Shown here: positions 406 through 63,129 of the stretch, one piece after another | How the letters are laid out: every line of letters starts with the position of its first letter | Position numbering within the stretch: the stretch's first letter is position 1 | Assembly: GCF_006345805.1 (NCBI RefSeq) | Contig: NW_021832004.1 | Coordinates: 1 to 64,000, forward strand | Length of the DNA: 64,000 nucleotides | Origin: Octopus sinensis | Taxonomy: Eukaryota | Direction of reading: 5' to 3' | Notes under the pieces: generated by a model | Databases searched by the model: none | Seen by the model: the letters and a program-made list of their open reading frames with translations, nothing else | Told to the model about the DNA's origin: nothing | Program-made: the position numbers and the translations under genes

Positions 406-636
406 CTCTGTTTATTTCGGTGTAAGTCCAATCTGTGTAAAAATTCAATTGAGCAGTTGTATGATCTTTAGATAACAACAAGCATCGTTTGTAATTAAAG
501 TTATAGTCAAACGATTGGCAAGTTGGTATTGCTTCGCAATTGAGCAGACATTGCGTATAATTGGAACCAGAAAAGAAACCCAAATCATAGTTAGAAGGTA
601 TAGCGGCTTTGTCAATAAAATCTAAAGGACATATTC
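406..636 (-). CDS. PAN/Apple-domain cassette exon A, left copy, intact (231 nt, phase 1-1)
   Basis: Acceptor ttcttacag| at 637 and donor |gtaagg at 405. Translates ICPLDFIDKAAIPSNYDLGFFSGSNYTQCLLNCEAIPTCQSFDYNFNYKRCLLLSKDHTTAQLNFYTDWTYTEINR, with the PAN pattern C-x3-C-x5-C-x-SF-x-Y...C-x-L. Confidence 0.85.
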
Positions 637-774
637 CTGTAAGAATAAGAAGGTAAATAAATCAACGTTGTCTTTTGTAGTTTTTCGTAATGGAGGTGAG
701 ACTATTTCACGTTGTACAGTGTTATTATTTTTGAATAATGAGAAATAACAGATATATTTTCTACTCTTTAAGAG

Positions 775-800
775 AGGATAATAATAATAAATATAATGAA

Positions 801-843
<43 letters not shown>

Positions 844-905
844 TAATAATAATAATAATAATAATAACAACAACGACAACAACAACAACAAAAACAACAA
901 CAAAG
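775..905. repeat. (AAT)n/(AAC)n microsatellite
   Basis: Seen directly in the sequence. Confidence 0.97.
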
Positions 906-3900
906 AGGAAAGTCTCTGACTTTAGCCATTTCAGACGAGTCCACCATACTACCGATTTCGCTACATCCACTAAACAAATAAAAATTGCCTGCTCCTCCCA
1001 GCCAAAGGAGGGCGGCGGGGTAATCCTCACTATGGATTCAGCTGATAGCCGTATCCGTCCAACACGTGACAGCAGGTGTTCGACATAAACCCACAGAGGT
1101 CAGCAATATTCGGTCACTGGACGAGGGCGTGTAGAACGGTTTCATCGTTCTGGGCACACCTCGAGCAGGCCTGGCTGACGGCACTTCCGTACCTGTAAAG
1201 TTTATCTCAAACAGTCAGCGCCCCTCGGTGGCACTGCCAGGCAAGGGATTTCTCGAGCTTATTCATAGGCCTAGGCCAGAAAGTTCTTCGAAACAGACCA
1301 TTTCGTTGATCTTCATCGACACCTAGAGTTTCCCCGAGAACGTCGTCGCGATATCCTTCCACTAGCCCTCTATAGAACGCTAGAATGGAACTACACCGAC
1401 CTCATTGTTCACCTGGCGGAGGGCGTAGACAAGCACCCCCTCTTCGGTCTACGCTTAATCCAGGTTTGCAGCTCAGTCAAAGGGACGGTCTGTGGAAAAA
1501 TGTACCTGACAAACAGTGACCACACCTGCTCATCGCCAAGGAAACGCTAGAGATGCCGCAAACTTAATGAATGTCTGCGCATTAGTAACAACGGCATGCC
1601 CAGCCCTCCATTCAGCGACTGTTGACAGTAGATGGAGCGCCTGAACATTGGAACGCGCGCCTTCCACAGAAAAGGGAAGAGTAAACGCTCTAGGTTGGTC
1701 AACCAGCAAACGGGGCAAGGGACGACGGTCAAGTGGTAATAGATGACAGATGCGATGTACACATTCGCCTCCTCCCCTCGACCGCTCTGAAGCAGCTCCC
1801 TATCGGCCCATTTCTGGGTTAGGTTGGTTACCTTCCTCGTCACTCCGTCCCAGTTTTTCTCCACCTGAAAGTCTGGACCAAACCAGACTCCGAGTAATGC
1901 AATTTAATGTGATCGTCTCTTTCGGTTCGAACACTTTGCATCCTTTCTGGTCCACCAAAGACCGAATGGTGGCTTTATTGCCACTTTTCACCTCCTTCAC
2001 GCGGGCCCATCATTTCGCTATCATTCCCTCTCCGCGGCTTTCGTGTTTGGCGTCGAAAATTGGTCAAGGGTCAACCTCACCGCCAACACGTCGGTTGCGA
2101 TGCATCTCCCTCTATTCTATTTCGTCCTATCGTCAACGCCTTGCTAAACCTAATTAATTCTTCTCTAATTTGCCCTTTTAAAAGCAAACCAACAGTTGTC
2201 GACGAGTGCCCCCGACAACGTCCGCTTAACTAATTCGCTAATCCGGTCTCTGTAAGCTTGACACATTGCCTTCGGCTTCCAGTAACCGGGACCGTGTCTA
2301 TGAAGCCTATCCAAGTCGACTGTAGAGATAAAAAATTTGTGTAGCTGACCATGTGAAATAATGAACACCCGATGATATCCTTGTCCGCTGGCTAACACAA
2401 TACTCTATCTAGATACGATCTAGATAACCAGATGCGGTTTGTTCAAGTCCACATTGGTACATTCGGGTAATCTAGTCGGTACCCGGCAGACAATGGAAAA
2501 CGTCTGAGTAAATTTTTGAGGATTTTGCACCCCATCTCTCATATAAGATACTTCCACGCAATCGAAACATCCATCTACGACAGCGTTCCAGTCCCCTACT
2601 AGTACGAATGTCCGCGACGTACTCCAGACACTTGAAATAATCAGACCACCCTGATCCTGTCAAAGCATAGGCAGCCGGCAGTCTGAAAGCCAAGCTGTCA
2701 CTGCTGTTGACATCTAGGACCACCAAATTACCTTCTGAATCCAGGAAGGCTGCCCTTATTTTCAAACCCGGACCCTTCCAGAAAAGCACCACAGTTCTAC
2801 TACTACAACACATTGGCCGACAAGGAGATAGAAAAATTTTCGTGGGTCGGATAATCTGGATTCACTAATGGCTGCAACATTTACAGTAAGGGACCTCAGC
2901 TCATGTAAAAGGTGACGTTGTTTCCAAGGTGACCCGAGGCCCCTGGCTTCTATAAAACTATCCTGAGCATCACCAAGTTAAAATAAATTTAGAATGGAGA
3001 AGAGCACCACTTACCACTGTCTCCTGGTATGATGGTACACTTCGTGTGGTTGTTTCCCTAGGTTTTTATATATTCGTTTTGTAAAAGTCTTTTGGAGCCA
3101 CCCCACAGCATCTGGAAATGTTGCTTTTATGGTGTTGTAATTTTGTTGTTTGGGTTTTAGTATATGCATGGGTGGTGGTGGTGAGTTCTGTCATGGCGGT
3201 GTTTGTATTGTCTCTTGAGTACGTAATTAAATCTATTATTGCCTGTATCAAAAGCTGTGAACTTTGTGGTGCTAGTAGAATCTGTTTGTGGTGGTATTGG
3301 TGTTTGAGTTGATAGCGCTGGTGGAGGTGGAGTTGGTGTTTGAGGTGATAGCACCGGAGGAGGTGGTGTTGGTGTTTGAGTTGATAGCGCTGGTGGAGGT
3401 GGAGTTGGTGTTTGAGGTGATAGTGCTGGTGGAGGTGGTGTTGTTGTTATCGGCTGTTGTGTGTGGGTGTTGCCGCTGTAGGGACGTTCAGTGTCCTTGC
3501 CCCTCCCCACTTTTTTCTTCTACAGTCTCACTAGATTTTTCTTTTTTTTCTTTGGTGGGGGTGGGGAAACTGTTTGCCACTCCCCTCCCCCCTCGACTTC
3601 ATTACTCGAACAGTCCGAGTTGTTTTGGTCGGGAAGGAGGATTGACTCCGACTTTTGGTTTTGGTGGTGTTCATTTGTTGCTGCTGCTACTGCTACAGTA
3701 GGTGTTGGTGGTGGTGTTACTGCTACTGGGGGTAGCAGTAACGATAAGGTCTTCTGAAAATAGTGGCACTGTGGAATGTTTTCTTGCTTCTTCCTTTGCG
3801 TAGCGCACTTCCACAGTACCGAACCATTTTCCACGTGTCACTTATGTTTTCTTCTTCCAAATTGGTTTCAGAATTAGTTCCAGTTATTCTTGTGTTGCTC

Positions 3901-5222
3901 GTTCCAATGACTTTGTTGTTTGTTTATACATTTGTACGTAATGCTTCTTCTGTTTGTGTCCAGAACAATTTCTTTCGGGGTATTTAGTGAGACATTATTA
4001 CCTTGTCCCACTAATAGCCCCTTGAATTTTTTTAAAATCCTCTAACGTGAAGTTTATCGTTTCTCTTGTTTGTTTCGCTGCAGAACCGAAACCGTGTGTA
4101 TTGGATTTGTCATTTGCGTTTGTGTTTGTATTTTCTTCGTTGTTTCTCTTGCTCATAGCGGTGGTGGCTTTGGCGGCGTTTAATTGACTTTTTTTCTTTT
4201 GCAGTGTTAATGGTTGTGTAGGTGCAGTTAGTGGTGTTGGTACTGTTCTTTGTGCTGTTCAGAGGATAAATCGCCGTGGTACTAACCGTCAGAAAAGCTG
4301 GGAGTTGGCAGAAACGTTTGCACGCCGGGCGAAATGCTTTGCGGTATTTCGTCTGCTGTTACGTTCTGAGTTCAAATTCTGCCGAGGTCGACTTTGCCTT
4401 TCATCCTTTCGGGGTCGATTAACTAAGTACCAGTTATGCACTGGGGTCGATATAATCGACTTAATCCGTTTGTCTGTCCTTCTTTGTTCCCTCTGTGTTT
4501 AGCCCCTTGTGGGTAGTAAAGAAATAGGTATTTCGTCTGCGGTTACGTTCTGAGTTCAAATTCCGCCGTGGTCGACTTTGCCTTTCATCCTTTCGGAGTC
4601 AATTAAATAAGTAGCAGTTACGAACTGGGGTCGATGTAATCGACTTAATCCGTTTGTCTGTCCTTGTTTGTCCCCTCTATGTTTAGCCCCTTGGGGTAGT
4701 AAAGAAATAGGTATTTCGTCTGCGGTTACGTTCTGAGTTCAAATTCTGCCGTGGTCGACTTTGCCTTTCATCCTTTCGGGGTAGATAAATTAAATACCAG
4801 TTACGCACTGGGGTCGATGTAATCGACTTAATCCGTTTGTCTGTCCTTGTTTCTCCCCTCAATGTTTAGCCCCTTGTGGGTAGTGATGAAATAGGTATCT
4901 TGTCTAACGTTACGTTCTGAGTTCAAATTCCGCCAAGGTCGACTTTGCCTTTCATCCTTTCGGGGTAGATAAATTAAATACCAGTTACGCACTGGGGTCT
5001 ATATAATCGACTTAATCCGTTTGTCTGTCCTCTCTGTGTTTAGCCCCTTGTGGGTAGTAAAGAAATAGGTACTGACCGTCAGAACTCTTAACGGAAAAGA
5101 ATCCCTTCTGTACACCAATAGGGGTTTAGAAAACAAAAACACTTACATAACAGTCAACAACCTTCAAAAATACACAAGAAAAAAATTCAAACATACTGAG
5201 CTTTCAAAACACGTCTTACCTC
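905..5222 (-). mobile_element. Tx1/L1-clade LINE 'Tx1-A', left copy, decayed, with internal and 3' deletions and a SINE array in its 5' region
   Basis: ORF2 fragments on the minus strand: GPGYWKP, NKATIRSLVD, VIYYHLTVVPCP, AKSVVWWTRLK. Bounded by AAT/AAC microsatellites on both sides. Confidence 0.85.
4295..5068 (+). mobile_element. tRNA-derived SINE head plus 4 tandem ~184-bp bodies, flanked by a 16-bp TSD
   Basis: Units start at 4,344, 4,528, 4,711 and 4,895 with GTATTTCGTCTG or a variant. TSD gtact(a/g)accgtcagaa at 4,279-4,294 and 5,069-5,084. Confidence 0.9.
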
Positions 5223-5258
5223 GACGACGACGACAAGAACAACAACAACAACAACGAC

Positions 5259-5310
<52 letters not shown>
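5222..5310. repeat. (GAC)/(AAC)/(AAT)n microsatellite
   Basis: Seen directly in the sequence. Confidence 0.97.
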
Positions 5311-5573
5311 TTGTGGTTATTAGGAGAGTAGACGTGATACTCAGGGTAATTGATGCACTTGGAAGTATCAGCACTCAACTACCAGCATGGCTGAAAAAGA
5401 TCGGTGCAAGTGTGAAAGTAGAACGCCTACAAAAATCAGCATTGCTTGGAACTACAAGAATTCTTCGCAGGGTCCTTGAAGCATGACCAGTAAATATGTG
5501 TCACATTAGTCCGCTGCTTGTGGACAGCTGACACTTTCCATGACACCCAGCAAAATAAGCTGTGAGTTTTCTT
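5310..5573 (+). mobile_element. 3' end of R4/Dong-like RLE non-LTR retrotransposon (right-arm copy ~45,470-45,730, minus)
   Basis: Translates VIDALGSISTQLPAWLKKIGASVKVERLQKSALLGTTRILRRVLEA*, the typical RLE-clade C-terminus. Embedded between (AAT)n and (TAC)n/(TAA)n. Confidence 0.7.
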
Positions 5574-5639
<66 letters not shown>

Positions 5640-5667
5640 TACTACTAATAATAATAATAATAATAGT
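5574..5667. repeat. (TAC)n(TAA)n microsatellite
   Basis: Seen directly in the sequence. Confidence 0.97.
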
Positions 5668-7020
5668 ATACTTTCTTATATTGGACCGCTCTTATAAAAA
5701 AGGAACAATACAACACAAAGGGACAAGTAGGGTGTTGAACAATGCCGTGTATACAATAAGTAACAGAAAATAGATAACAAAAAATAATTGAACAATAAAA
5801 ATTCCCAAAGGGGTTAGCTCCTCACAGGGACAACGACAGACCCCCACACTACCTGGTTATTCCGACCGCCAGTGCAACTCCTCCGTTTACAAACGAAAGT
5901 TCAGAGCAGGCCCCTTTACTAGGACCATCCTCACCACATACACCCACCTTTCATCAAATTTACTGGGGAGCAGAACTTCCCTCTCTACCCTCACTTACTT
6001 TTTTAAGTGGAACTTGAAAAAGTCAATGAGGGTTTGGCCCAAGAGGAAAGCATCTGTCTTCAGTCCTCTCAGTTTTATCAACCGCTTTCGCCATAGCTAC
6101 CAGACAGAGGAAGACTGTCTTTTCTTCCTGGTCAAGGAAGGAAGGAAGGAGGGTGGCGATCTTCACGATGGACTCAGATGATAACCGGATCTGTCCTACA
6201 CGCGATAACAACCGCTTGACAAAGCTCCACAAATCAGTAATGCAAGGAAACAGGATGAGTGCGTGCAGGACGGTTTCGTCATTCTGCGCACACTTCGAAA
6301 CAAACCAGTCTGACCGCACTTTCGTGTCTGCAGAGATCGTTTGGAGCCGGCAGAGCTCCCCGATAGCACAGCCAGGACATAGAAGTTTGGAAGTTATCCA
6401 TACGATTCGGCCTGATAGTCCTCCGAAAAGATCAGTTAGTTGATCCCTTCCGACGCCCAGAGTTTCCACAACGACGTGATTCTTACCCGCTACTAATCCC
6501 CTATAGAACTCCGCAGTGGAACTTCCTCTGACCGCGTTGCCCGACTGACAGGAGGCTCTGAGCTTTTCCTAACACTCCAGGTGCCACGCGTCCTTTCTGG
6601 GTCTACGCTTGATTGAGTACTATAACTCCGACAATAACATGAGCTGCAGAAAATCCTACTTGACAAATAGTGACCACATCTGTTCACCGTTAGAAAATGC
6701 TGGAGATGTTGTAGCCTCAGCGCATATCTGTACATCATTAGTCAGGGCACGCCCGGTCCTCCACTCTGTGGCTGTTGTTAGCAAATGAACCGTATGACGA
6801 GGGGAACACGTCCTTTCCAGAGAAGGCGGGATATTAAGCGTTCTAGCTTGGTCAGTTACAAAGCAGGGCAATGGACGATTGTCAGGTGGTAAGAGATGAG
6901 GGAAACTATGTACGCATTCGCCACCTCTACACAACCTTTCGGGAACAATTTCTTCTCTACCCATTTCTTGTGCGAGATTGGCTCTCCTGCTCGAGTGGTG
7001 GAATCGGAGACTAGCAAAAT
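5668..7020 (-). mobile_element. 5'-truncated Tx1-clade fragment 'Tx1-C' (right-arm copy ~43,990-45,365, plus)
   Basis: Motifs YAYIPSLIYYHL, DQLTDLF, ETVLHALI and IVKIA match the ORF2 C-terminus of the other Tx1 copies. The 3' end abuts a trinucleotide microsatellite. Confidence 0.8.
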
Positions 7021-7039
7021 TACGTGGGATTTCTTAATC

Positions 7040-7330
7040 CAAACAGATCAAGTGCTAGAGCTAACAGACCGGACATAGTGGTGGTGGACCGCATATGCTA
7101 TATCGTTGATGCTGCATACTCCTTTGACTCACGAATAGTCAAGAAAGAAGGCGATAAAATAATAACATACAAACCCTTGTTAAGTACAAAAAAACTCGGT
7201 TATGGGAAATGAAGAAGGTGAAGTCCCAATTATTGTGGTGGGTGGGGTTGGGACATTTCAGAAGGCACCATGAGAGGTATAAAGACATTGGAAAAAGGGC
7301 ACAGTAGAACTGTAACAAAAGGTTTGTCTC
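7040..7330 (+). mobile_element. RLE (PD-(D/E)xK) endonuclease fragment of an R2/R4-type LINE (right-arm copy ~43,680-43,960, minus)
   Basis: Translates ANRPDIVVVDRICYIVDAAYSFDSRIVKKEGDKIITYKPL. Confidence 0.65.
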
Positions 7331-8655
7331 TTATGCAAGGCCAGAATAATCAGGTAAATATTCAATGATGAAGCGAGAGTGGCTGCATGAAATCCAAGAT
7401 ACGTTAAGAAATATAGAAGCCCAAGAAGACATAATGATATGTACAGAATGGAAAAAAAAGCAATTAAGAAATTGACCCATAAAGACAGGAGAGCTCTCTT
7501 GAGCTCTGACACATTGAATAGGAACGTGCAGAAACACTGCTCTCTCAGATACCCCAAATTGCAAAGTCCATGGGATTGACATCTAGACTTAGGAGAGGCC
7601 ATATTTTCTTGTCTCCAAAACCGTTGAAATGCTCTTAAACCACCTCTGTCTCAAATTGGATGTGTGGGGCCGGAGCCCTGTTTAGAGTGAAGGTGTAACG
7701 GTCACGAAAGGTTTCTGTGATCCAGGGTAACACTATCTCATTCAACATTTCCAAATAAACCTCACTGTTATCCTTGACGCCCCAGAATCGATGAAGATCG
7801 ATGGCGGCTTGGACCCATCTGATGCATCTGTAACCCACACTATGAGAGAAGCTGTCTTCTGATGGCGTATATGAATCCTGTTACTGTCGGGCAAGTCCCC
7901 TGCATTATGTGCATAAAGCCTGTCATTCTATTAGAAACTGCCTCCGCGATGAATAGTTTCTCATCGAATCATATCAACACTTTGTTAGTGGCACGCTTCT
8001 TCTCAGCTAACATAGTTTTACCCCTGTCGAGCCGTTTCTTCTTGGATGTTGCTGAATTGACCGCTTGGATTGTTTCTTTTTTGCAGCAAGTTTTAAATCC
8101 CCTTTAAAATCCTGTTCATTGACGATTTCTATATATCAAGAGTTTTTGGAGCTTTTCTTGACTCCTGCTGGGATTTCCGTTCATTCGTTTCTTCACAGCT
8201 TCAATATTCCAATTGTTTGCTTCCTACCAGGAATTGGCTTGCTAGAAGTTGTAGTGGACTCCATATATTGTTTCCAGGTATTGAACAGTTTTACGACACA
8301 CATTCAACCGTTTTGTTATGTCATCGTTGCTCACTCTAGCTGCTCTCAAAGCGACAATCTGGTCACGTTTTTACTTTCGGTGCCATGTTTGTTTGCAAAC
8401 CAGTTTTAGACGAACGAAGCAATAGAAACATGAACAAAATACATAAGCAATCTTTACGTTAAATGTAGATATTACCTGAACCGATATTCTTTAGGAAGAG
8501 TTTTACACACGGGTAAATCTTTCTGGGGCACTCTGGACATGAATGACAGATATAGAAGAGAAGAGAAGAGAGAGAGGGGAGGGGAGAGAGAATGAATGAG
8601 TGAGAGAGAAAGAGAAAGAAAGAGAGAGAGAAGAGAAGATATATAGAAAAAGTGT

Positions 8656-8703
<48 letters not shown>

Positions 8704-9283
8704 AATAGAGTGTTACTCAGGATGTGGGTAATTCTGATTTGATCCAGTTTGAGGGTTTTCACTCATTTTTTCCCTTTTCTTTGATTTATATTTTAAAAAC
8801 AAAATGTGTTTTACACATTCAGTTAAGCATCTTGTGTAATTATTGTGCATAGTTTTAAAAACTGTTATCATATTCTGTTTTATTATAAGATCCTTTTCGT
8901 CTCCTCACAAACTGATGTCACATACATACACAACACACACACAGACATTTATTTTCATCATCAAATATATTGAGAATATTCTCTGAGAGTCACATGACAA
9001 AACGGTCTCATAAAACTTTACATTTTCTCTTCCCTCCTCGGTAATCTTGTGTCTCAATCCGTTTCTAAATTTTCTGCTAAACACATCACTAAAAACTTTA
9101 TTAGAACTTTAACTCTCCGGAATGAAAACTCTACAAACAATTATTTTCCAACTCACGCTAATCTACATCGACCAGAGAAATCGCAGACAATTTTCAAATG
9201 CCGACGGTATTGTTTCTCTTTGGACTAAAACATAGAATACAAGTCAAGGAATGAAATAAACACAAAAGATTCAATTTGTTTAC

Positions 9284-9543
9284 CGTCTCTATACTTGGTC
9301 GGCACAGATCTTCTCAACTGATAAAAATGGGTATTAGTTATTTTTATTAGCATCCTCTCTGTTGAGTCTTTCTTCGTATAAAATACAGCTTGGACTTATC
9401 GTTCTGCTCACGAAAGATTTACATGCAGAAGTTTCAAAACAACTCTTCGAACAGTGAAAGGCATCCAGGTCAAGTGTCATCAATGTATTACCGTCTTTCA
9501 GAGCACAGTTTGGTACTTTCATAAATATACTTCAGATATTCAA
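9284..9543 (-). pseudogene. PAN/Apple exon B, left copy, two 1-nt insertions (260 nt)
   Basis: Same acceptor (gttacag|) and donor (|gtaaac) as 41,448-41,705. It has an extra A in 'tatAtttatg' and in 'gaagaaAg' relative to the intact copy. This could be an assembly error. Confidence 0.75.
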
Positions 9544-11304
9544 CTGTAACAAAGCCAGGCAAATTAAACAACCAAAATACGAAGACGAAAATAAAACATT
9601 GTGAAAATAGATAATAATAAAGATAGAGAATATTAAATGTTTGAGGATCAGCATTGATATTTTTTACCAGGAAGAAGTGATAGAGTTGTTACTACCATAT
9701 TGGAGGTACAAAGCATCTTGGGATATATAATCTGTTTAATGGAAATGACTGCGAATGAGTCTTAAATGTTGTTTAATTAATTCTATTATTTAAATGATTC
9801 ACAAGTTATATGCTATAATGTTTAACGGTTGTCTGTTGTAAAGAATGTCCCCTAATACCAGCACTTTTTGTTTTATTTAACAAAATGCTTACAAGCTGAC
9901 GGAAAACTGAATTATCACCAATGGAAATTATGTTAAGAAGCGAATTCGTCATAATACGAGATTTATCTTGAGTTTCTTTTCATCTAATTTAATTAGGAAA
10001 GGAAAATATTTCTTCCACTGAACTTATAAATTAAAGTTTTGAGTAGTGATTTCCATAATTTTCATAGATATATGTCTATATATTGATATAAATTTACTTA
10101 CGTCCATTTCCAAATGTCAGTGAGATGTAGAAGAGAACTGCAATGAAAATTTATTTTGTAAAAAATTTCATATTTCATATTCACGTTTAACATTAATTTA
10201 CAAAGAATGAAGATGAAAGGAATAAGAAAGAAAGTGCTACAAGCATAATTCAGTAACAAATACGGCGATGACCACCACTACATCACCATAAAATTACCCA
10301 TTGAAATAATGAGGGAGAGCGACAAATTGGAGAGGGATAGAAAGAGAGGGAACATAAGAGAGAGGGGTAGGAGGAGTGAGGGTGAGATAAAAAAAGAGAG
10401 GAGCAAAAATAGAAAAAGAGGAAGAAGAAAAAGAAATGTTATTTGTTTCAACACGAGATCAGAAGCATCAGTATTTCTTGGAAAGAACATTCTAGACACT
10501 TCAGAGACTTTAGTGAAAGTATTACGTATAACTTGTTCGTAGAATTAACCACTTTTATAAAGGCGATTCACCACTTTTATAACGGGTTGATTCTATCTTA
10601 TTTATAGAGTGATTATTCTCCTGAGTAGACTTTTCTAAGTTCACGTCGGCTTGTCACCAATATATAAGGTTGTGTTGATAATCTGGTATAGAATGTTTTT
10701 GACTTGGAAAAGATAATAAATATAGATGTTTACTGAGTAGAAATCTATAGTGATAACCGGTCACTTATAACTTAACTATAAGTGTTATCACTATACATAA
10801 ATCTTAACTCAGGCTGCGTAAACACCGTGATGAATTATACACGAAGACGCTGAAACGTACATGTTGAAAGGTCACCGCTATAATAACAGTTTCATGGATA
10901 CAGAAATAAATCTCATTAACAGGTTGAAAGAATGAAGAAAGAGTAATTTTACTAAATTAGTTTATTTACGTACATTTAATATTTACAGTACATTTAGAAG
11001 TCAAAGAAAATTGTCGTAGAGAGTTACGACATAAACTTTATATTAACTAATTCTTCCATACGAAACTAGCAGAGTTTTACACAACGATTCAAAATAGTCT
11101 TGTGGGATTTAAGTAATAGAGATGGCATAAAAATAGCCAATATCTCAAGACAGGGAGTGTCGTGGAAATGAGTGACAGCCAACGAACACTGAGGGTGAGT
11201 GTCGTGGAGTCTAGTAACAACCAACGATCCCTGATTAATTTGATCTCACTGGACAAGGGATAGGCATAGTTCAGAAGGTTTAGGTCATGTTAATATTCAC
11301 CCAT

Positions 11305-13022: not shown

Positions 13023-13494
13023 TATATATCAAAGTTTTACCACAATAGAGGGAGGAAAAGAAATTGCATTACTTTTGATTATCCTTGTTGCTTATTTTGA
13101 TTTTAATCACCTTACTTTGAAATTGTATGGATAATAACCGTACTAAATTCTGGTCCCTCAACTTAAGTACCGTATTCATGTGAATCTAAATTTTACTGAA
13201 CTCATATATATATAAATTGTGTTCTTGTAGGGTCTCAGTCGTGATGGCTAAACTCTTAAAATTAAAAGCATATATTAATTATACAATAAAACATTTACAT
13301 ACAAATAATTTGAAGATAATTCCTCCTTAACATCCTGTCTGTTTCTAGGTAGAAATGGCTTTCAAGAACGAGATGTTACTTGTTTGAATTTATCCTCTTA
13401 ATGAAGTGTTTGTATCTATTCAATACACTTTATAAAGATACTCCGGGTGAAAAAGTATTGACTTAACGATTGAGATGGCATAAGATCACCAGAT

Positions 13495-13552
13495 GATACA
13501 CACACCACACACACCACATATATATTATATATATACATATAATATATATATA

Positions 13553-13595
<43 letters not shown>

Positions 13596-13695
13596 TATAT
13601 ATATAATATTATATATATATAGATATATACATATGTGTGGTTGTCTGTGTCTGTGTATGTGTGTGTGCTTTTGCATGTGTATGCGTATGCATGTT
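13495..13695. repeat. (CA)/(TA)/(TG)n microsatellite
   Basis: Seen directly in the sequence. Confidence 0.95.
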
Positions 13696-45365: not shown

Positions 45366-45414
45366 GTATTACTATTATTACTATTATTATTATTACTATT
45401 ATTATTATTATTAC

Positions 45415-45467
<53 letters not shown>
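45366..45467. repeat. (TTA)n microsatellite
   Basis: Seen directly in the sequence. Confidence 0.97.
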
Positions 45468-45729: not shown

Positions 45730-45756
45730 CATTATTATTATTATTATTATTGTTGC

Positions 45757-45790
<34 letters not shown>

Positions 45791-45825
45791 ATAATAATAA
45801 TAACTATTATTATTATTATTATTAA

Positions 45826-45865
<40 letters not shown>

Positions 45866-45922
45866 TTTATCCTTATCATTCTTATTGCTATTGTTATTGT
45901 CGTTGTTGTTGTCGTTGACGAC
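45730..45922. repeat. (ATT)n/(GTT)n microsatellite
   Basis: Seen directly in the sequence. Confidence 0.97.
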
Positions 45923-46074
45923 GAGGTAAGACCTGTTTTGAACGCTCCGTCAGTTTGAATTTTTCTTGTGTATTTTTGAAGGTTGTTGACTGTTATGTAA
46001 GTGTTTTTGTTTTCTAAACCCCTATTGGTGTATAGAAGGGATTCTTTTCCACTAAGAGTTCTGACGGTCAGTAC

Positions 46075-52116: not shown

Positions 52117-53099
52117 CAGACTAAATACGGCTACGCATTTCGCCCGGCGTGCTAACGTTTCTGCCAGCTCGCTGCCATTCTGACGCCCAGTACCTCAACG
52201 ATTTATCTTCTGAACAGCACAAAGAACAGTACCAACACCACTAACTGCACCGGCACCACCATTAACACTGAAAAAGAAAAAAGTCAAGAAAACACCGCTG
52301 TGAACAAGAAAAACAACGAAGAAAATACAAACACAAACGCAAATGACAGATCCAATAGACACGGTTTCGCTTCTGCAGCGAAACAAACAAGAGAAACGAT
52401 AAACGTCACATTAGAGGATTTAAAAAATTTCAAGGGGCTCTTAGTGAGACAAGGTAATAATGTCTCTCTAATACCCCGAAAGAAATTGTTCTGGACACAA
52501 ACAGAAGAAGCATTACGTACAAATGTATAAACAAACAAAAAAAGTCATTGGAACGAGCAACACAAGAATAACTGGAACTAATTCTGAAACCAATTTGGAA
52601 GAAGAAAACATAAGTGACACGTGGAAAATGGTTCGGTACTGTGGAAGTGCGCTACGCAAAGGAAGAAGCAAGAAAACATTCCACAGTGCCACTATTTTCA
52701 GAGACCTTATCGTCGTGCCGACATGTCTTGGTCGGCATGTTAACAAAATTAATATCGGCCGGGGGGGGGAGTACCCCTGAATTAAACATATGTTGGCTGA
52801 TGGCCGCTGTCTTCTATGATATAGAGGATACGGCCGCGATCCTGGAGGTGTATAAGTTGCACCGACAAAATTGGACGGGTCAGGAGTTGGAACGCTTGTC
52901 CAAATGGAACAAGAGGACCTCAAGTCTATCCCTGACTCCTTAAACTCACCGAAGAGCACGAGACTACGCGTAGCTGTGGAGGGCAGGAGGCCGAGGTGCT
53001 ACTTTCGTGGAAACAATCAGCACCTTAACATCGACTGCCAAAATACAAGGAGATGCGTCGAACGCTACAACCGACACCAGAAAAAGGGACATCTCCTAA

Positions 53100-53130
<31 letters not shown>

Positions 53131-56100
53131 CGGAGTACCCCCCCCCACCCCCGCCACCGGCCGGGGTACCACTACCCCGTCGCAGCAGTAACACCACCAC
53201 CACAACTACTGTAGCAGTAGCAGCAGTAACAAATGAACACCAACAAAACCAAAAGTCGGAGTCATCCTCCTCCCGACCAAAACAACTCGGACTGTTCGAG
53301 TAACGAAGTCGAGAGGGGGGGGGGTGGCAAACAGTTTCCCCCCCCACCAAAGAGAAAAAAAGAAAAATCTACTGAGACAGTAGAAGAAAAAGTGGGGAGG
53401 CGCTAGTAGACACTGAACGTCCCAACAGCGGCAACACCACACTCAACAGCCATAACAAACAACACACCTCCACCAGCACTATCACCTCAAACACAAACTC
53501 CACCACAGATTCTACTAGCACCACAAACTTCACAGCTATTGATACAGGCAATAATAGATTTAATTACATACTCAAGAGACAATACAAACACCACCATGAC
53601 AGAACTCACCACCACCACCACCACCACCACCACGCATACAAATATTAAAAACCACACAACAAATTTACAAACCATAAAAGCAACATTTCCAGATGCTGTG
53701 GGGTGGCTCCAAAAGACTTTTACAAAAAGAATATATAAAAACCTAGGGAAACATCCACATGAAGTGTACCATCATACCAGAGGACAGTGGTAAGAGGTGC
53801 TCTTCTCCATTCTATAGTTATTTTAACTTGGTGATGCTAAGAATAGTTTTATAGAGGCCAGGGGCCTCGGGTCACCTTGGAAACAACGTCAGCTTTTAAA
53901 TGACCTGAGGTCACTTACTGTAAATGTTGCAGTCATTAGTGAATCCAGATATCCGACCCACGGAGATTTTTCTTTCTCCGTGTCGGCCTGGGTGGTGTAA
54001 TAGTAAAACTGTGGTGCTTTTCTGGAAGGGTCCGGATTTGAATATAAGGGCAGTCTTCCTGGATCAGAAGGTAAGTTGGTGGTCCTAGATGTCAACAGCA
54101 GTGACGGCTGGGCTTTCAAACTGGTGGCTGACAGGGGCAGGGTGGTCTGATTACTTCAAGCGTCTGGAGTACGTCTCGAACATTCGTACTAGTAGGGGAT
54201 TAGAACGCTGTCTTAGATGGATGTTTCGATTGCGTGGGAGTTTCTTATAAGAGATGTGGGGTGCAAAAACCTCAAAAATCTACTCAGACGTTTTTCCATT
54301 GTCTGCCGGGTACCGACTAGATTATCCGAATGTCCCAATGTGGACTTGAACAACCGCATCTGGTTATCTAGATCGTATCTAGATAGAGTATTGTGTAAGC
54401 CAGCGGACAGGATATCATCGGGTGTTCATAATTTCACATGGTCAACTACACAGACCACAAATTTGTGATCTGTACAGTCGACTTGGATAGGCTTCATAGA
54501 CATGGTCCCGGTTACTGGAAGCCGAAGGTGACGTGTCAAGCTTACAGTGACCGGATTAGCGAATTAGTTAAGCGGACGTTGTCGGGGGCAATCGTCAACA
54601 ACTGTTGGTTTGCTTTTAAAAGAGCAAATTAGAGAAGAAGAATTAATTAGGTTTAGCAAGGCGTTGACGATAGGACGAATAGAATAGAGGGAGATGCATC
54701 GGAACTGACGTGTTGGCGGTGAGGTTGACCCATGACCAATATTTCGACACCAAACACGAAAGCCGCGGAGAGGGAATGATAGCGTAATGATAGGCCCGCG
54801 TGACGGAGGTGAAAAGTGACAATAAAGGCACCATTCGGTCTTTGGTGGACCAGGAAGGACACATGGTGTTCGAACCGAAAGAGACGGGCCATTAAATTGC
54901 ATTGCTCGGAATCTAGTTTGGTCCAGACCTTCAGGCGCAGAAAAAACTGGGACGAGGTGACGAGGAAGGTAGCCAGCCTTACACAGACATGGGCCTATAG
55001 GGAGCTGCTTCAGAGCGGTCGAGGCGAGGAGGCGAATGTGTACATCGCATCTGTCATCGATTACCACTTGACCGTCGTCCCTTGCCCCGTTTGCTGGTTG
55101 ACCAACCTGGTGCGTTTACTCTTCCCTTTTCTGTGGAAGGGGCGCGTTCCACTGGTCAGGCGCTCCATCAACTGTCAACAGTCGCTGAATGAAGGGCTGG
55201 GCATGCCGTGGTTACTAATTCGCAGACATTCATTAAGTTTGCGGCATCTCTAGCGTTTCCTTGGCGGTGAGCAGGTGTGGTCACTGTTTGTCAGATACAT
55301 TTTTCCACAGACCGTCCCTTTGACTGAGCTGCAAACCTGGATTAAGCGTAGACCGAAGAGGGAGTGCTTGTCACAGCCCTCCGCCAGGCGAACAATGAAG
55401 TCGGTGTAGTTTCACTCTAGCGTTCTATAGAGGGCTAGTGGAAGGATATCGCGACGACGTTCTCAAGGAAACTCTAGGCATCGATGAAGATCAACGAAAT
55501 GGTCTGTTTCGGAGAACTTTCTGGCCTAGGCCTATGAATAAGTTCGAGAAGTCCCTTGCCTGACAGTGCCACCGAGGGGCGCTGACTGTTTGAGATAAAC
55601 TTTACAGGTACGGAAGTGCCGTCAGCCAGGCCTGCTCGAGGTGTGCCCAGAATGAGGAAACCGTTCTACACGCCCTTGTTCAGTGACCGAATATTGCTGA
55701 CCTCTGTGGGTTTATGTCGAACACCTGCTGTCACGTGTTGGACGGATCCGCTATCAGCTGAATCCATAGTGAGGATTACCCTACCGTCCTCCTTTGGCTG
55801 GGAGGAGCAGGCAATTTTTATTTGTTTAGTGGCTGTAGCGAAATCGGTAGTATGGTGGACTCGTCTGAAAGGGCTAAAGTCAGAGACCTTCCTCTTTGGC
55901 CAAGCCCTTACCAACTTTTTCAAGTTTCATTTGAAATGGAATTTGGGGGTGGAGAGGGAAGTGTTGCCTTGTAGTAATTGTGTTGAAAGGAGGGTGAATG
56001 TTGGAAGAATGTCCAGTGCAAAAAGACCAATTCTTTGCGCGCACCTGTAAACAATAAAAGGGATTTAAAGAAGGCCTCTTGCTCTGTTGATCAGGCACCC

Positions 56101-56289
56101 GTGGCCTTTGTGGGGTTTTCCACGAGGATCTTAAGCGCCTCCCCTATTAGGTGTTTTTTTATTTGTTTGATTTACTTGCTATATATATTGTTTACACGCC
56201 GTAAAACCCATTGTATCTTCCCGTTTTTGTCTGTTATGTTGTTGCATGTCATTCAATGTTATTTTATGTGAGTGATCATGGCTAATAAA

Positions 56290-56334
56290 ATAATTTATTA
56301 CTATTATTATTATCATTATTATTATTGTTATTGC

Positions 56335-56389
<55 letters not shown>

Positions 56390-56400
56390 TATTATTATTA
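56290..56400. repeat. (ATT)n microsatellite
   Basis: Seen directly in the sequence. Confidence 0.97.
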
Positions 56401-56582
56401 TCCTCACTTTTATCATCACAATATTATCACAATATTGATATTTATTAAAGAGTAGAAAATAATCTATTAATTATTTCTCATTATTCAAAAATAATAACAC
56501 TATACAACGTGAAACAGTTCCACCACCATTACGAAAAACAACAAAAGACAACAGTGATTTATTTATTTTCTTCTTCTTACAG

Positions 56583-56812
56583 GAAGATGTCCTTTAGATT
56601 TTATTGAAAAGCTGCTATACCTTCTCACAATGATTTGGGTGACTTTAAAGACTTCAGTTACACGCAATGTCTGCTTCATTGCGAAGCAAAAGCAAAATGC
56701 CAATCGTTTGACTATCACTATAATGACAAAAAATGCCACTTGTCATCTAAAGATCATAGAACTGTTGAATTGTATTTTTACAAAAATTACATTTACACCG
56801 AAATAAACAGAG
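56583..56812 (+). pseudogene. PAN/Apple exon A, right copy, 1-nt deletion in an A-run (230 nt)
   Basis: Splice sites are intact. 'attgaaaagct' has one base fewer than left 'attgacaaagcc'. The downstream frame reads DLGDFKDFSYTQCLLHCEAKAKCQSFDYHYNDKKCHLSSKDHRTVELYFYKNYIYTEINR. This could be a homopolymer error. Confidence 0.75.
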
Positions 56813-57001
56813 GTAAGGGCGTCATTTTCTTGTTTTTATTTATTTATTTTGTTGGAATTATACACAGTCAGTTGGACAAGACTAAGGCACCACCTTCAAA
56901 AATGTGTTAGTCTGTTATATTGAGGTTGGGTCTTTGATTTACTTGGCTCTATCGATTGGCTAAGTCCAATGTCATATAAAGGTACGGACTCAATACCAAA
57001 T

Positions 57002-57046
57002 TAGATAGATAGATAGAAAGATAGATAGATAGATAGACAGATCGAT

Positions 57047-57078
<32 letters not shown>

Positions 57079-57200
57079 CAGATACATACATACATACATA
57101 CATACATACATACATACATACATACATTCATACATACATACATACTCGCATACATATATAGATGCACGCATACATGCATACTTACATGCACGCACACACT
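57002..57200. repeat. (TAGA)n/(TACA)n microsatellite
   Basis: Seen directly in the sequence. Confidence 0.95.
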
Positions 57201-58399: not shown

Positions 58400-58830
58400 A
58401 AACAATTTTCAGTGTCGATGATGCCTGCCTTTGTGTTTCATTTTGTTTTTTTTGTATATTCCACCCTAGGTTGTTTTTCCCTGCTTCGATACAGTCCTGG
58501 CAACTGGCAATTGATCAAGCCACTCCCATCCTTTCTTCTGGACAAGTGTCAGTCTTAGTATGGAAAGCTCCGTGCACTGTCAAAAATGTTTCTGGTCTTG
58601 GTATTCTTCATTTCTCTCTTTTGCCATTTTATAATTCCCACTCCATACCGAAGTGATGCTATCGCCCACGTATCGACTGCTTGGATTTTATTCTATCCAG
58701 TCAATTTTTAGCGCAACACCAAACTCAGTAGTCAGACATACTAGGGCCCTAGTCTGTCCATGAAGATAGCTTCCTCATAGACAGACTAGAACCCCAAATT
58801 AACAACATGCTGCATATTTTCAGCCAGCAT
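58400..58830 (-). mobile_element. Decayed R4/Dong-like RT C-terminal region
   Basis: The reverse strand reads DTWAIASLRYGVGIIKW...KTR..LTVHGAFH.KTD...RRKDGSGL. Confidence 0.55.
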
Positions 58831-60256
58831 ATAATTCAGCTACATCTGGATGTGTGTAAGTTCATTTCTGGTAACATGCTCAGGTATTATAAAAAATACT
58901 GCACGTACAATAATACATGACTTAGAAGCAGCGCTGCGGATATGCCAACACACCGGAACTCGAGACAGGGCCACCCTCACGCACTTCTCATGAAGAATTC
59001 CAGCAGGGCTTCGTAAGACCACTGCAGAGACGCTTCCGAAAAATAAATTCAGTAAGCGTTGGGGGAAAACCGTTGATAGCAGTAACTCGATCAATTCCTA
59101 GCAATATCTGTAGAAGGAATTTTTATATTCCGAAATATTACTATATCAGACTATGAGTAATTAATTTATAACAGTTATGATAGTCCACTCTGCATTGTTC
59201 TGCCATTGAAGACACGTTATATTTCGCACTGTATATATTTGCAGGCCACTAAAATAGTCACACCAGATTGTTCGGTTATAAAATTATGTGACGGAAAAAA
59301 GGAGAAGAAAAACAGAGAAAAAGAAAAAGATGTAAAATATAATAAAAAACCCAAAGAAAATAAGGGGCAAAAACAGGAAAGAAAATTCACAGCGACTTTG
59401 CTCTTCTCAATACGTGTGACATGTCGGTTAATACAATCTGTTGATTTCCAACATGAATGGTAATCTAGGGATCATTCTTAAAAAATCTTCAGTTCAAGTG
59501 ATCCTATAACCACTGGTATTGTAACCGTCTTGAGATGCCATCTTTGCTCCTACTACTGTGTGGTATTATCATATGTTGTTTAGTTTCCACTTTTGTCTTG
59601 TACATAATATCATCATAAATATGTGAGGGCTGGAGGTGATAGTAGGAGAAAGAGGAGTAGCTTGCAGGTGGGGTGGATATTTTTAAATTTTCCTTTGCTT
59701 TCTTTAGGTTTTTCTGTGTTTTATAGTTTTCGTAATTGTGCAGTTTGTATACATTGGCAGGTGCTTATCTCCTTAATTTTTTTCATTCGTTTAATTTGTT
59801 GCTATAAAAGGTACGTTTACATAATTGAGTAGTCAGGGTGAAAAGAAGAGTAAAATTTTCATAAAAAATTGTAGATATTAAAGTTTTAAATTTTCTCAAG
59901 ATGACCGTTTGTATGTCCGGCCAGAGAAAACTGTAGCGTTCTTGCAATAAAAGGGGGTTGTTTATTTTTGAATATTCAGGGAGGAAGGAGAGAGATAGTA
60001 TTCACAGAAGTTGTAAATATTTTTAATGATTTTTAAAGATTTTAAAGATGATCGTCTGTGTGTTCGCCCAGAGAAAATTAAAGATATGTAAGTTTCTAGC
60101 CTTATGGGGTGGTGGTGAGATTTTAAAATACTCACAGGAGATTGTAGATGTTCCAATTACCAAAAGTTATATTTCAGTTGTTCTGCCGGGTGTGTTAGTG
60201 TTTCTGTGTCTTCGGCTACTGACTGGTCAGTGTAGTTGCTGTCAAGGCTAGCGTTC

Positions 60257-60257
<1 letters not shown>

Positions 60258-60302
<45 letters not shown>

Positions 60303-60352
60303 TATTATTTTTATTATTATCACCATTATTATTATTGTTATCATTATTATTG
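60258..60352. repeat. (TTA)n microsatellite
   Basis: Seen directly in the sequence. Confidence 0.95.
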
Positions 60353-60369
60353 ATTTTGGTATTTTAGAA

Positions 60370-60460
60370 GGATTGACGAACCTCATCACAAAGGTAAATA
60401 GACAATACGAAAAGCATTTCGTCTGGCGTGCTAACGATTCGGCCAGTCCGCCGCTTTAGC
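60370..60460 (-). mobile_element. SINE head fragment
   Basis: Reads 'gcatttcgtctggcgtgctaacgattcggccagtccgccgc'. Confidence 0.6.
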
Positions 60461-62174
60461 ATTGCAGACAACATATTAAAATTAATTCCGATCTATTCTA
60501 CACGCTTCCCTGAACTGTTCCAGAAAAAATCATTTTTTCCAACTCCAATGCGGACTAATTATATTGTAAGACATATACCCCGGACTCCTTAACAAGAATC
60601 GAAACCTCGGTCTTCACGCTTGTTATATTGTTTCCTTGCCATTTGTGTTAGAATCCATTCGTTTTACCTATTTAATTCGCCACCATTTTAGATGAGACAG
60701 AGTGTAATCTTGTTAATCCATTCCGATCTATTGTCAATGGTCTGACTTGACTTTAGCACTGCAATAAATTCGAGATACCAAGAGAAAAATGTTCTCTTTC
60801 CTTTGCAACTTCCAAACAGTTAACTATGGCACCTTCTCGCGAGCTTTGCCCCATTTACCCACCTCAAGTTAGGGTTCACTATTAACAACTGCCATGGTAA
60901 TAGATTATCCATAAAAACTAACTAAATTTTGTGTTTACTTCCCATTCGTCGCACTTGCAGAACCGCGTAAGTAAAATCTACAGTAAGTGTGAAATACCTT
61001 TCAGCAGTTCTTTGCAGTGCATCCAGAAATATTATCTACGCATTGCACAGTCTTTCGCCAACTTGTCACATCTCTACGTGTTACAAACAACTTGCTACAT
61101 CGTGCCTGTTACGCTTTTCCCGTTACAATTATACCGTTATACATATAAAGACATGTTTGAAGTACATTTCGAACGTAGCTAGGATCTTTATAAACGTATG
61201 TCCCTTCATATCTGAGGCCTTGTGTTATTACTAGAAATAACTGATAGTAAATAAAACTCAACATATATTAAAGAAGTAATGACTTCTTATATAAAATTAT
61301 CTTATATATAAATAGGTAACTCGATTGTATTAAGGAGATTAGGATTTCTTTATTAATATTAAAGAAACCACGAAAGATATTAAGACCATCAGAAGAATAA
61401 GAAACTATTTTATTCCATTTCAGAACTTTGGAACGATTTCAAACAGTCAAATACACTGGACAAGATTAACTCTGTGGGATGTGGTATATATTTTTCGACT
61501 CTAATTATTTCGTTGACAGTAAGACCCTATTTTTGTTTATTTTTTGTGTTTTTCGTTTCTGTTTCTGGTTTCTCATCTTTAATTCATTGATCTCTAGTTT
61601 TGCCACAAAAAATTAAAAAATAAATAAATATCTCTTTCTTCTACATCACATGAGTATTTCTACTTAGAAACTTAATTCTTAATTAAATATATTAACAGTA
61701 AAATTATTATATCCATCCAAAAGAATGTTGTAAAACAACCCACAAATACATTTAAAATCTGGCAAATGGATTAATATTAATCTCCGTTGTCATTAAAATT
61801 CTCAACACGCTTCCTTACTAATCTGCAAGAAATACCTCAATACATCTCGCCGGTAATACGAGAACCACTCCCTCCGAGACACCCAACAACATTCTCATTC
61901 TCATTCTCCCGTCATACATGCTATTTCACCAGCCAGATCCCACATCAATTATTATCCCCAGTCCTTCCTTTCTAGATTATACAACACTCACGAACTCACT
62001 CCCTACTCACACTAACCTAAAGATGTCCAAACGGAACATGAATAAAATCGATCTATCGAATCAATAGGCCACATCTATTCGTTTCCCTTGTACTTTGTCA
62101 GACTAGAGCAATAATTTAATTTATGCTCTTATATTTATTGTGTTTCCTCTTTCCAATTTTTCTTTCTCTTGCAG

Positions 62175-62365
62175 AAAAAGAAACTAATGATTTGACAGCT
62201 TATTCAACATTTTCCTTCAAACAAAATCCAAATCTCTACCTTATAACCGAGGCCCAAATGGATGCTCACTCGGTTCTGGATTGTTCCCGTTTATGTATGA
62301 TATCTTCTACATGTACTGCCTTTTCATATACTAACACTAAGTGCCTACTAAAGAAACTGATCTGA
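62175..62365 (+). CDS. PAN/Apple terminal exon C1 (phase-1 acceptor to TGA)
   Basis: Acceptor ttctcttgcag|aa. Translates KETNDLTAYSTFSFKQNPNLYLITEAQMDAHSVLDCSRLCMISSTCTAFSYTNTKCLLKKLI*. AATAAA at 62,811. Confidence 0.75.
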
Positions 62366-62938
62366 ACTTTAATTGAATTCACCCAAAAAGTACTTACTTC
62401 TCCATGAAATGTGAGCAAGACTTCAACAGATCAGGTTTGCTAACCTATTTTGCTTATTTTTTTGTGTGCTTTTTTCTTTTTATTGTATCTCATATTTAAT
62501 TTATTGATCTTCTGTCTCCAGTTCTTGTCGAAAAAATAAGAGAAATTAATGTCGCTTTCTTCTTCATCGCATTATGTCTTCTAATTAGAGTCCTAATTCT
62601 TAGTTAAATATATTAGCAGTAAATTTATAATTCCTCTCCCCGAGATAGCCAGCCACATGCCCCTTCTCCTTCTCCCGTCATACATGCTATTACACCAACC
62701 AGATCACATCCCGCATCAATTATTATCCCCAATCCTTCCTTTCTAGATTATACAACACTCAGAAACTCACTCCCTACTCTCACTACTCTAAAGATGTCCA
62801 ACGGAACATTAATAAAATCGATCTATCGAATCAATAGTCCATATCCATTCGTTTCCCTTGTACCCTCCAATGAAGAGCAATAATTTCATTTATGTTGTTA
62901 TATTTCTTGTGTTTTCTCTTGCTTTTTTTCTATTGCAG

Positions 62939-63129
62939 AAAAAGAAAATAATGATTTGACAACTTATTCAACTTTTTCCTTCAAAACAAATCCATATCAC
63001 AACCTTATTACCAAGGCCCAAATGCATGCTCACTCGGTTCTGGATTGTTCCCGTTTATGTTTGATATCTTCTACATGTACCGCCTTTTCATATACTAACA
63101 CTAAGTGCCTACTAAAGAAACTGATCTGA
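62939..63129 (+). CDS. PAN/Apple terminal exon C2 (tandem duplicate of C1, intact)
   Basis: Acceptor ttctattgcag|aa. Translates KENNDLTTYSTFSFKTNPYHNLITKAQMHAHSVLDCSRLCLISSTCTAFSYTNTKCLLKKLI*. AATAAA at 63,241. Missed by the ORF track because it has no in-frame ATG upstream. Confidence 0.75.

Follow-up and report, generated by a model that had tools for sequence, protein, structure and literature searches.

Two inverted, probably decaying copies of a three-PAN-domain gene at the start of an unplaced Octopus sinensis scaffold

The first 64,000 nucleotides of an unplaced Octopus sinensis scaffold (VCDQ01003122.1:1-64000; scaffold length 81,245 bp, assembly GCA_006345805.1), referred to here as the window, carry two sets of exons encoding PAN/Apple domains. 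The two sets lie head to head, the left copy on the minus strand and the right copy on the plus strand. This locus raises the question of whether the two copies are genes that can still make a protein, and whether their inverted arrangement is a property of the genome or of the assembly. The initial annotation, made from the sequence without database searches, described a divergent pair of multi-PAN genes of a secreted recognition or adhesion family. The observed inverted pair of PAN-exon copies is confirmed. Its members, however, are most likely unprocessed pseudogenes or decaying duplicates arising from birth-and-death turnover, with conversion of exon patches, a reading to which we assign a probability of about 0.68.

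Six stop-free stretches correspond to the six exons proposed initially, two each for the domains termed B (B_L and B_R, PAN 1), A (A_L and A_R, PAN 2) and C (C1 and C2), and the outer coordinates given for them, 406 and 63129, are exact exon ends. That these exons encode PAN domains is borne out by a HMMER comparison with Pfam, in which all six peptides match PAN_1 (PF00024) with 21.2-38.9 bits: A_L 32, B_L 21.2, B_R 25.1, A_R 38.9, C1 24 and C2 22, B_L lying 0.2 bits below the gathering cut-off of 21.4 bits. C1 and C2 encode only a short PAN (Pfam positions ~16-53 of 76), and in the intact relatives P0004, P0002 and P0017, PAN_1 matches three stretches per protein, at 58.8-73 bits. A four-cysteine core, C-x3-C-x5-C-x10-12-C, recurs in B, A and C and is, judged by sequence only, invariant or nearly so across the family. 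Five cysteines are present in A_L, A_R and B_L, and four in B_R, C1 and C2, while a sixth occurs only in some paralogs. The strict apple domain of the factor XI/prekallikrein type, with six cysteines and a third disulfide joining the first to the last, is thus not what these exons encode.

The exons that had escaped the initial annotation were located by tblastn with family proteins and by direct reading, yielding a full six-exon gene model. Intact members of the family, 265-282 residues long, comprise exon 1, exon 2, B, A, an optional D and C, the last encoding a short PAN 3. Five loci (L001, L002 with two genes, L003, L004 and L006) show this order, SP1-SP2-B-A-(D)-C, and every intron is in phase 1. 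Exon 1 encodes 'MLRRNYLQII', D a linker of 32 residues ('ELWNDF...'), and C ends the protein with '...CLLKKLI' and a stop codon. Exons 1 and 2 together encode MLRRNYLQIIFLFYISLTFGNG, which can be read as having a basic n-region and hydrophobic core, with small residues at positions -1 and -3; the proposal that the family is secreted is reasonable, as intact members start with this signal-peptide-like sequence. In the window, every acceptor is an AG and the donors of A and B are GT, all in phase 1. The notion that the copies are built from one-domain exons with symmetric phase-1 boundaries holds in part. The intact A (231 nt) and B (258 nt) exons each encode one domain between two phase-1 boundaries, as in exon shuffling, and exon 2 (36 nt) and the ancestral exon D (96 nt) are likewise 1-1. 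Exon C is terminal and has a phase-1 acceptor only, C1 and C2 lack a donor, B_L and A_R are not multiples of three, and the two short, putative signal-peptide exons and the 96-nt linker exon stand beside the PAN exons. C1 and C2, first taken for successive domains, are instead tandem duplicates of the terminal exon, each with the family's genuine stop codon. Their duplication units (61868-62443 and 62634-63203) are 87.8% identical; C1 ends in the same way as O. bimaculoides LOC106868906, and the nearest match of C2 is the C exon belonging to the gene that precedes LOC118766702 on chromosome CM016875.1.

The two copies differ at their 5' ends. The window contains a single exon 1, that of the left copy, which is located outside the repeat arm, has a TATAAA 101 nt upstream, and encodes a sequence identical to the start of O. 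sinensis LOC118766702 and LOC118761175. A search of the window for a second exon 1, belonging to the right copy, with a degenerate pattern and by BLAST with the exon-1 regions of four loci, recovered only the one at 13333(-), and none lies within 26 kb upstream of the right copy. What remains of the right copy's intron 1 is cut on its upstream side by a long interspersed nuclear element (LINE) at 35.9-39.3 kb. O. vulgaris sequence (L002 5786-7486) matches window 39258-40958 at 83%, and L003 5554-8659 matches 39332-36144.

Neither copy retains an uninterrupted frame from the ATG to the KKLI stop. B_L carries two 1-nt insertions, one near 9526 and one in the A-run 9368-9370, both absent from the right copy, LOC118766702 and LOC118761175. 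In A_R, a 1-nt deletion between 56607 and 56608 parts the first cysteine from the rest of the domain, and D has lost one nucleotide at 61487/61488 that is present in each of the five paralogous D exons compared. If the exons are spliced without correction, the left copy reaches a stop after 40 residues, and the right copy, having no start exon, shifts frame in A and again in D. The left copy was described as continuing beyond the window, but it runs off the start of the scaffold; it is cut after A, with no D or C on the scaffold. With four frameshifting 1-nt indels in B_L, A_R and D, a right copy without exon 1 and a left copy cut by the scaffold end, the two copies, as assembled, are not intact genes.

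The weight of these lesions depends on how many of them could be errors of the assembly. Between the arms of the repeat that holds the two copies, 1-nt indels number 78 per 9307 nt (8.4 per kb), and the exons common to both arms contain 3 in 525 nt, compared with 4.4 expected without constraint. Orthologous sequence of O. vulgaris and O. sinensis from this gene family, 24392 nt in length, shows 153 substitutions and 21 one-base indels, and the resulting 0.86 indels per kb is an upper bound on the combined error of both assemblies. At this rate, at most ~1.3 assembly-error indels are expected in 1559 nt of exon, and 4 are observed (Poisson P ~0.05). Because the exon indels exceed the error bound and match the neutral density, the lesions are probably real and both copies unprocessed pseudogenes. 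Proteins encoded by either window copy are absent from the searched collection, whereas the product of the neighboring LOC118761175 is present.

Some observations weigh against this interpretation. Each of the four lesions is an indel of one base in A/T-rich sequence. The scaffold is unplaced, comes from a long-read assembly and carries a repeated family, a setting in which polishing is weakest; some of the lesions may be errors of the assembly. No splice site or core cysteine has been lost, and any inactivation would therefore be recent. An alternative reading holds that the left copy at least is a working gene with frameshifts due to assembly error, and that the locus is a genuine divergent pair of secreted three-PAN genes. 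Consistent with this are the conserved upstream region, TATAAA at -101 and ATG exon of the left copy, canonical GT-AG splice sites throughout, the retention of conserved motifs together with the core cysteines in all exons, and the position of every lesion next to an A or T run. We nevertheless regard this alternative as unlikely, given an indel baseline that falls short of the four lesions, an exon indel density equal to that of the introns between the arms, a right copy without exon 1, and the lack of a recorded protein for either copy.

On the preferred reading, that both copies are decaying, the window holds part of an array of an octopod-restricted gene family, and the arms are old paralogous copies, ~6% diverged and head to head. 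The left copy retains its promoter-proximal region and exon 1 but carries a doubly frameshifted B and is cut by the scaffold end after A. The right copy is without exon 1, is frameshifted in A and D, has a LINE in its B-A intron and has its terminal exon duplicated in tandem. Neither would make a protein, and at most they may serve as donors in gene conversion. Unprocessed pseudogenes in other birth-and-death arrays with gene conversion likewise keep their introns, show a neutral density of frameshifts, lose 5' exons, take up transposons and contain discordant exon patches. Compared with these, nothing at this locus is unusual save the inverted orientation of one copy, and the locus itself is unsurprising for a fast-evolving tandem family.

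The two copies lie in the arms of a large inverted repeat, which self-BLAST resolves into five collinear reverse-complement blocks (Table 1). The arms are 93.6% identical by substitutions over 9307 ungapped columns (~91% with gaps counted), inside the range of 90-96% estimated initially from sampled introns. The right arm is 6.3 kb longer than the left, mostly owing to a 5.08-kb LINE block that corresponds to the private 5-kb insertion noted before; two smaller pieces of ~0.4-0.5 kb, 55899-56315 and 52714-53183, are also confined to it. The left arm begins at the scaffold end, adjoining a (TCTA)n microsatellite.

Table 1. Coordinates of the gene-copy exons, repeat arms and mobile elements (window positions).
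Feature	Coordinates	Strand	Remarks
Left exon 1	13333-13303	-	ATG, 'MLRRNYLQII' and one base; GTATGT donor, phase 1
Left exon 2	10137-10102	-	36 nt, phase 1-1; remainder of putative signal peptide, 'FLFYISLTFGNG'
Left exon B (B_L, PAN 1)	9543-9284	-	260 nt; two 1-nt insertions
Left exon A (A_L, PAN 2)	636-406	-	231 nt, phase 1-1, open frame
Left gene upstream region	13334-14892	-	90-94% conserved with upstream of LOC118761175 and LOC118766702
Right-copy intron 1 remnant	39258-40423	+	~1.2 kb; homologous to O. vulgaris paralog intron 1
Right exon 2	40852-40887	+	36 nt, phase 1-1; no exon 1 ahead on plus strand
Right exon B (B_R, PAN 1)	41448-41705	+	258 nt, phase 1-1, intact
Right exon A (A_R, PAN 2)	56583-56812	+	230 nt; one 1-nt deletion
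Right linker exon D	61424-61518	+	'ELWNDFKQSNTLDKINSVGCGI...'; 95 nt rather than 96
Terminal exon copy C1 (short PAN 3)	62175-62365	+	191 nt; phase-1 acceptor; ends '...CLLKKLI' and TGA
Terminal exon copy C2 (short PAN 3)	62939-63129	+	191 nt; tandem duplicate of C1
Left arm	121-10530	-	left exons 2, B, A; old LINE fragments; 184-bp tandem array
Right arm	40424-57096	+	16.7 kb; collinear with left arm
Block 1	121-888 / 57096-56316	reverse-complement	self-BLAST
Block 2	901-3329 / 55898-53465	reverse-complement	self-BLAST
Block 3	3398-3724 / 53504-53184	reverse-complement	self-BLAST
Block 4	3741-4355 / 52713-52117	reverse-complement	self-BLAST
Block 5	5259-10530 / 45781-40424	reverse-complement	self-BLAST
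Private LINE insertion	47033-52116	-	in right-copy B-A intron; non-LTR retrotransposon
Spacer between copies	14893-39257	.	transposon-rich
Reverse-transcriptase fragments in spacer	15.0-15.2 kb; 34.1-35.7 kb	-	
LINE in spacer	35.9-39.3 kb	+	
188-bp array in spacer	22716-23200	.	spacer also holds microsatellites

Collinear reverse-complement arms that are too diverged to be alleles are the mark of an inverted segmental duplication, and by this measure the window, as assembled, contains one. Substitutions between the arms amount to 5.7-6.4%, compared with 0.3% (module alignment) and 0.63% (over 24 kb) between O. vulgaris and O. sinensis orthologs, and the arms further differ by 110 indels and several insertions. 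As the arms are ~10-20 times more diverged than the two species, a mis-join of haplotypes, which the initial annotation had named as a possible refutation, is argued against. In a tree of the exon 2-B module (1.4 kb) from the four closest O. sinensis copies, left and right pair at 5.7%, and LOC118761175 and LOC118766702 at 5.3%. Past the inner end of the repeat, the sequence next to each copy resembles that of a different paralog lineage.

The inverted juxtaposition could nonetheless be an artefact in which haplotypes or paralogous regions were joined head to head in the spacer, or in which the scaffold represents a deeply divergent haplotig. The window comes from an unplaced 81-kb scaffold that starts in a microsatellite, and from 59.4 kb to its end (81.2 kb) the scaffold is collinear with chromosome CM016875.1 at 22.01 Mb, where the 3' end of an unannotated copy is followed by LOC118766702, with 3-6% substitutions. 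The two pairs in the module tree are each ~5.5% apart, as two loci with two haplotypes each would give. All other copies examined are arranged head to tail (two in L001, two in the O. vulgaris locus L002, and the right copy with LOC118761175 in L006), the left copy being the only inverted one seen. Set against this, alleles with the divergence, 110 indels and private LINE of the arms would have to be many times older than the split between the species, arms made by a fold-back read artefact would be nearly identical, the 64-kb window contains no N gaps, and the copies continue differently past the repeat boundary, each like a different paralog lineage. We therefore hold an artefact of this kind to be of low probability; ordinary haplotypes and a fold-back do not fit, and what could still account for the arrangement is a chimeric join within the 24-kb spacer or a pair of very old balanced haplotypes. 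The collinearity itself extends over ~22 kb (L006 941-22779 with L001 1-24621), and divergence falls to 0.6% in its last 2.2 kb; this stretch represents either a segmental duplication that takes in two genes or a haplotig of very high divergence.

Divergence is unevenly distributed along the arms. No other 231-nt stretch of the repeat is as dissimilar between the arms as exon A, in which 38/230 sites differ, 2.6 times the arm average. Its synonymous divergence (dS) is 0.16 and its nonsynonymous divergence (dN) 0.20, and the diverged block reaches into the upstream intron and ends sharply at the 3' end of the exon. Positive selection was considered as the source of this excess and rejected: dS is raised as much as dN, the block enters the intron, and no dN/dS ratio (omega) significantly above 1 was obtained. 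A mosaic or gene-conversion origin appears at least as likely. In exon B, differences cluster in the first third, and 11 informative sites group the left copy with LOC118761175 and the right copy with LOC118766702, as opposed to 19 sites in the adjacent intron that group left and right against the other two; the third grouping has 0 sites. Right exon B differs from that of LOC118766702 at 4/258 nt, compared with ~7.5% in its flanks. Short-tract gene conversion thus moves exon patches between paralogs. When seven to eight copies are compared, the exons have diverged about as far as their flanks. Divergence is much higher in the A module (0.35) than in B and C (0.13), and pairwise omega ranges from 0.45 to 1.2 with none significantly above 1, which indicates weak constraint on the exons, positive selection not being demonstrated.

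These patterns invite the further possibility that the three-PAN family forms a recognition repertoire peculiar to octopods and diversified in the germline, made up for instance of lectins of mucosa or immunity, or of binding proteins in saliva or reproduction. Variable PAN loops would be shuffled among many tandem copies by short-tract conversion, with inverted or broken copies serving as donor cassettes. We keep this reading open because conversion is confined to exon patches, PAN 2 is more divergent (35% versus 13%), omega is near 1 and many copies lie on unplaced scaffolds, but consider it improbable. Turnover, exon-scale conversion and the variable PAN 2 do make the family a reasonable candidate for cephalopod-specific recognition, saliva or reproductive proteins.

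The distribution of relatives bears out the proposal of a lineage-specific family. The joined exons, compared by word index with 5.8 billion proteins, retrieved twelve matches, all of them from O. sinensis, O. vulgaris or O. bimaculoides and labelled 'uncharacterized' or 'Apple domain-containing'; a profile search adds two further Octopus proteins. With a full HMMER profile search, 233 of 1.84 billion representatives were hit, and the close ones are from Octopus, with one Argonauta hians protein of the same layout. The next matches are giant Octopus proteins with 14-21 PAN repeats and Sushi repeats, and the few weaker matches looked up (E 1e-21 and above) were all from Octopus. With ~14 uncharacterised Octopus proteins and one from Argonauta as its close relatives, the gene family appears to be octopod-restricted. 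As had been anticipated, no standard gene name applies: a literature search for the family, its locus names, or PAN/apple proteins in octopus or molluscs found nothing on the family. The annotation value of the locus is that two unannotated, probably dead copies can now be placed in an uncharacterised, octopod-only family of predicted secreted PAN proteins.

The Octopus relatives (O. sinensis LOC118766702, LOC118761175, LOC118766713 and LOC118761179; O. bimaculoides LOC106868906; and O. vulgaris CAI-type 'hypothetical predicted proteins') have the same exon order, phases and KKLI* stop context as the window copies, with protein identities of 82-98% in exon B, 85-100% in C and 36-65% in A. Unlike the window copies, which are frameshifted, 5'-truncated or cut by the scaffold end, and of which one is inverted, these database members are predicted to be intact, although several of the models are truncated or chimeric. 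A third family gene, LOC118761175 (P0013; L006 10001-14446), the protein of which resembles left exon B, follows on the plus strand 5.3 kb past the window end, with exon 1 at contig position 68467; the first 5534 nt of its locus (L006 1-5534) are window 58467-64000, with 0 mismatches.

The PAN 2 domain provides the clearest link to known structures. An AlphaFold2 model of the intact relative P0004 has a mean predicted local distance difference test score (pLDDT) of 47.5, and PAN 2 alone is modeled confidently (70-82). Foldseek matches the predicted PAN 2 to SML-2, the plasminogen PAN domain (root-mean-square deviation 1.6 A over 74 columns), MIC4, the N domain of HGF and leech LAPP, and the closest solved structure by sequence is Sarcocystis SML-2 (E 5e-4). 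The octopus family thus has in common with the PAN superfamily, which includes the plasminogen/HGF N domains, the apple domains of prekallikrein/factor XI and nematode PAN, the PAN_1 matches, the four-cysteine pattern and, as far as the confident model of PAN 2 goes, a predicted helix-on-sheet fold. It differs in having no protease, kringle or catalytic partner domain, in the five rather than six cysteines of PAN 2 in the window, and in its PAN 3, which ends after the fourth core cysteine, unlike full PAN modules. Sarcocystis muris SML-2 and Toxoplasma MIC4, small secreted ligand-binding proteins with tandem PAN/apple domains, are the best structural and sequence matches among solved structures, at only ~16% sequence identity and with unrelated lineage and biology. 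Their ligand we take to be galactose, from the entry titles and general knowledge. The salivary leech LAPP (1i8n), also among the fold matches, is a small secreted invertebrate PAN protein without any other domain; it has one PAN domain versus three in the octopus family.

Judged by the domain type, a role of the family in recognition or adhesion, as initially suggested, is plausible. The intact relatives may be secreted, probably glycosylated binding proteins, either lectin-like or protein-binding, with a specificity that would reside in variable loops, above all in PAN 2. Conservation across the family is highest in the segment between PAN 1 and PAN 2, 'FYQLRRSVPTKYRDG(R/K)CP' (alignment A4, columns 96-112). 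Conservation of the dibasic RR within this segment does not extend to Argonauta or the more distant O. bimaculoides paralogs.

Comparison of the copies also flags problems in database models: one from O. vulgaris is chimeric, and some from O. sinensis are truncated. The O. vulgaris model P0003 (298 aa; L002 10001-51098, OX597830.1) is a chimera of two adjacent tandem genes, the first contributing B, D and part of C, and the second part of B, A and C. In the RefSeq model of LOC118761175 (121 aa), the frame runs past the donor of exon B into intron sequence, and the 8 kb of scaffold that remain yielded no exon A for this gene. On the chromosome, the C exon (L001 2645-2831) of the unannotated copy that precedes LOC118766702 is split over two frames in tblastn, and this copy is probably also a pseudogene. 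In P0007 (O. bimaculoides LOC128249715), residues ~186-355, after exon A, match LINE fragments of the window in tblastn, which suggests an exonised transposon or a mis-prediction.

The geometry of the inverted repeat brings to mind one further explanation, in which the pseudogene pair is read through into a long hairpin RNA and processed into small RNAs that regulate intact PAN paralogs. The arms, at least 10 kb long, 94% identical, inverted and within 30 kb of each other, have exon sequence in common with expressed paralogs, but nothing beyond this geometry favors such a role. There is no evidence of read-through, the spacer consists of 30 kb of transposons, and Rfam and tRNA scans of the window returned nothing (ARAGORN calls no tRNA gene in it), so that we consider this explanation very improbable.

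The private LINE encodes an open reading frame (ORF) on the minus strand (50188-48152, 679 codons) with RVT_1, the best protein match of which is only 56% identical, followed by a zf-RVT-like tail at 47252-47725 and a poly(A) near 47.23 kb; its database relatives carry PF03372 (AP-endonuclease), RVT_1 and zf-RVT. It is located at the edge of the right-arm 184-bp tandem array. Arrays of this 184-188-bp unit occur in both arms and in the spacer (4343-5071, 22716-23200 and 46072-47032), with copies 87-93% alike, and an origin from a tRNA-derived short interspersed nuclear element is unsupported, since ARAGORN finds no tRNA in the window. Old fragments of one LINE family, mutually ~66-68% identical, are likewise spread over both arms and the spacer (901-1897, 5925-6993, 34115-35768, 37707-38842, 44017-45080 and 54902-56011); those within the arms predate the duplication.

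No PAN-family exons were found in the spacer (14893-39257). A candidate relic C exon at 27.37-27.59 kb (-) gave a weak tblastn match (E 0.1-1), and was attributed to chance, having no DNA similarity and stops in all frames. An open ORF of 452 codons at 30255-31613 (+) has no Pfam match even at E 0.5, and may be an unclassified retroelement; its 'LYRDDGL' motif recalls reverse-transcriptase motif C, and its tail is cysteine-rich. A 36/72-bp minisatellite lies within the B-A intron in both arms (3290-3448; 53.1-53.5 kb), and it reads as a proline-rich repeat (PPPPALSPQTPT) when translated from one strand. The spacer also contains a 237-bp tandem duplication at 32694-33187, present in 2.1 copies that are 97% identical.

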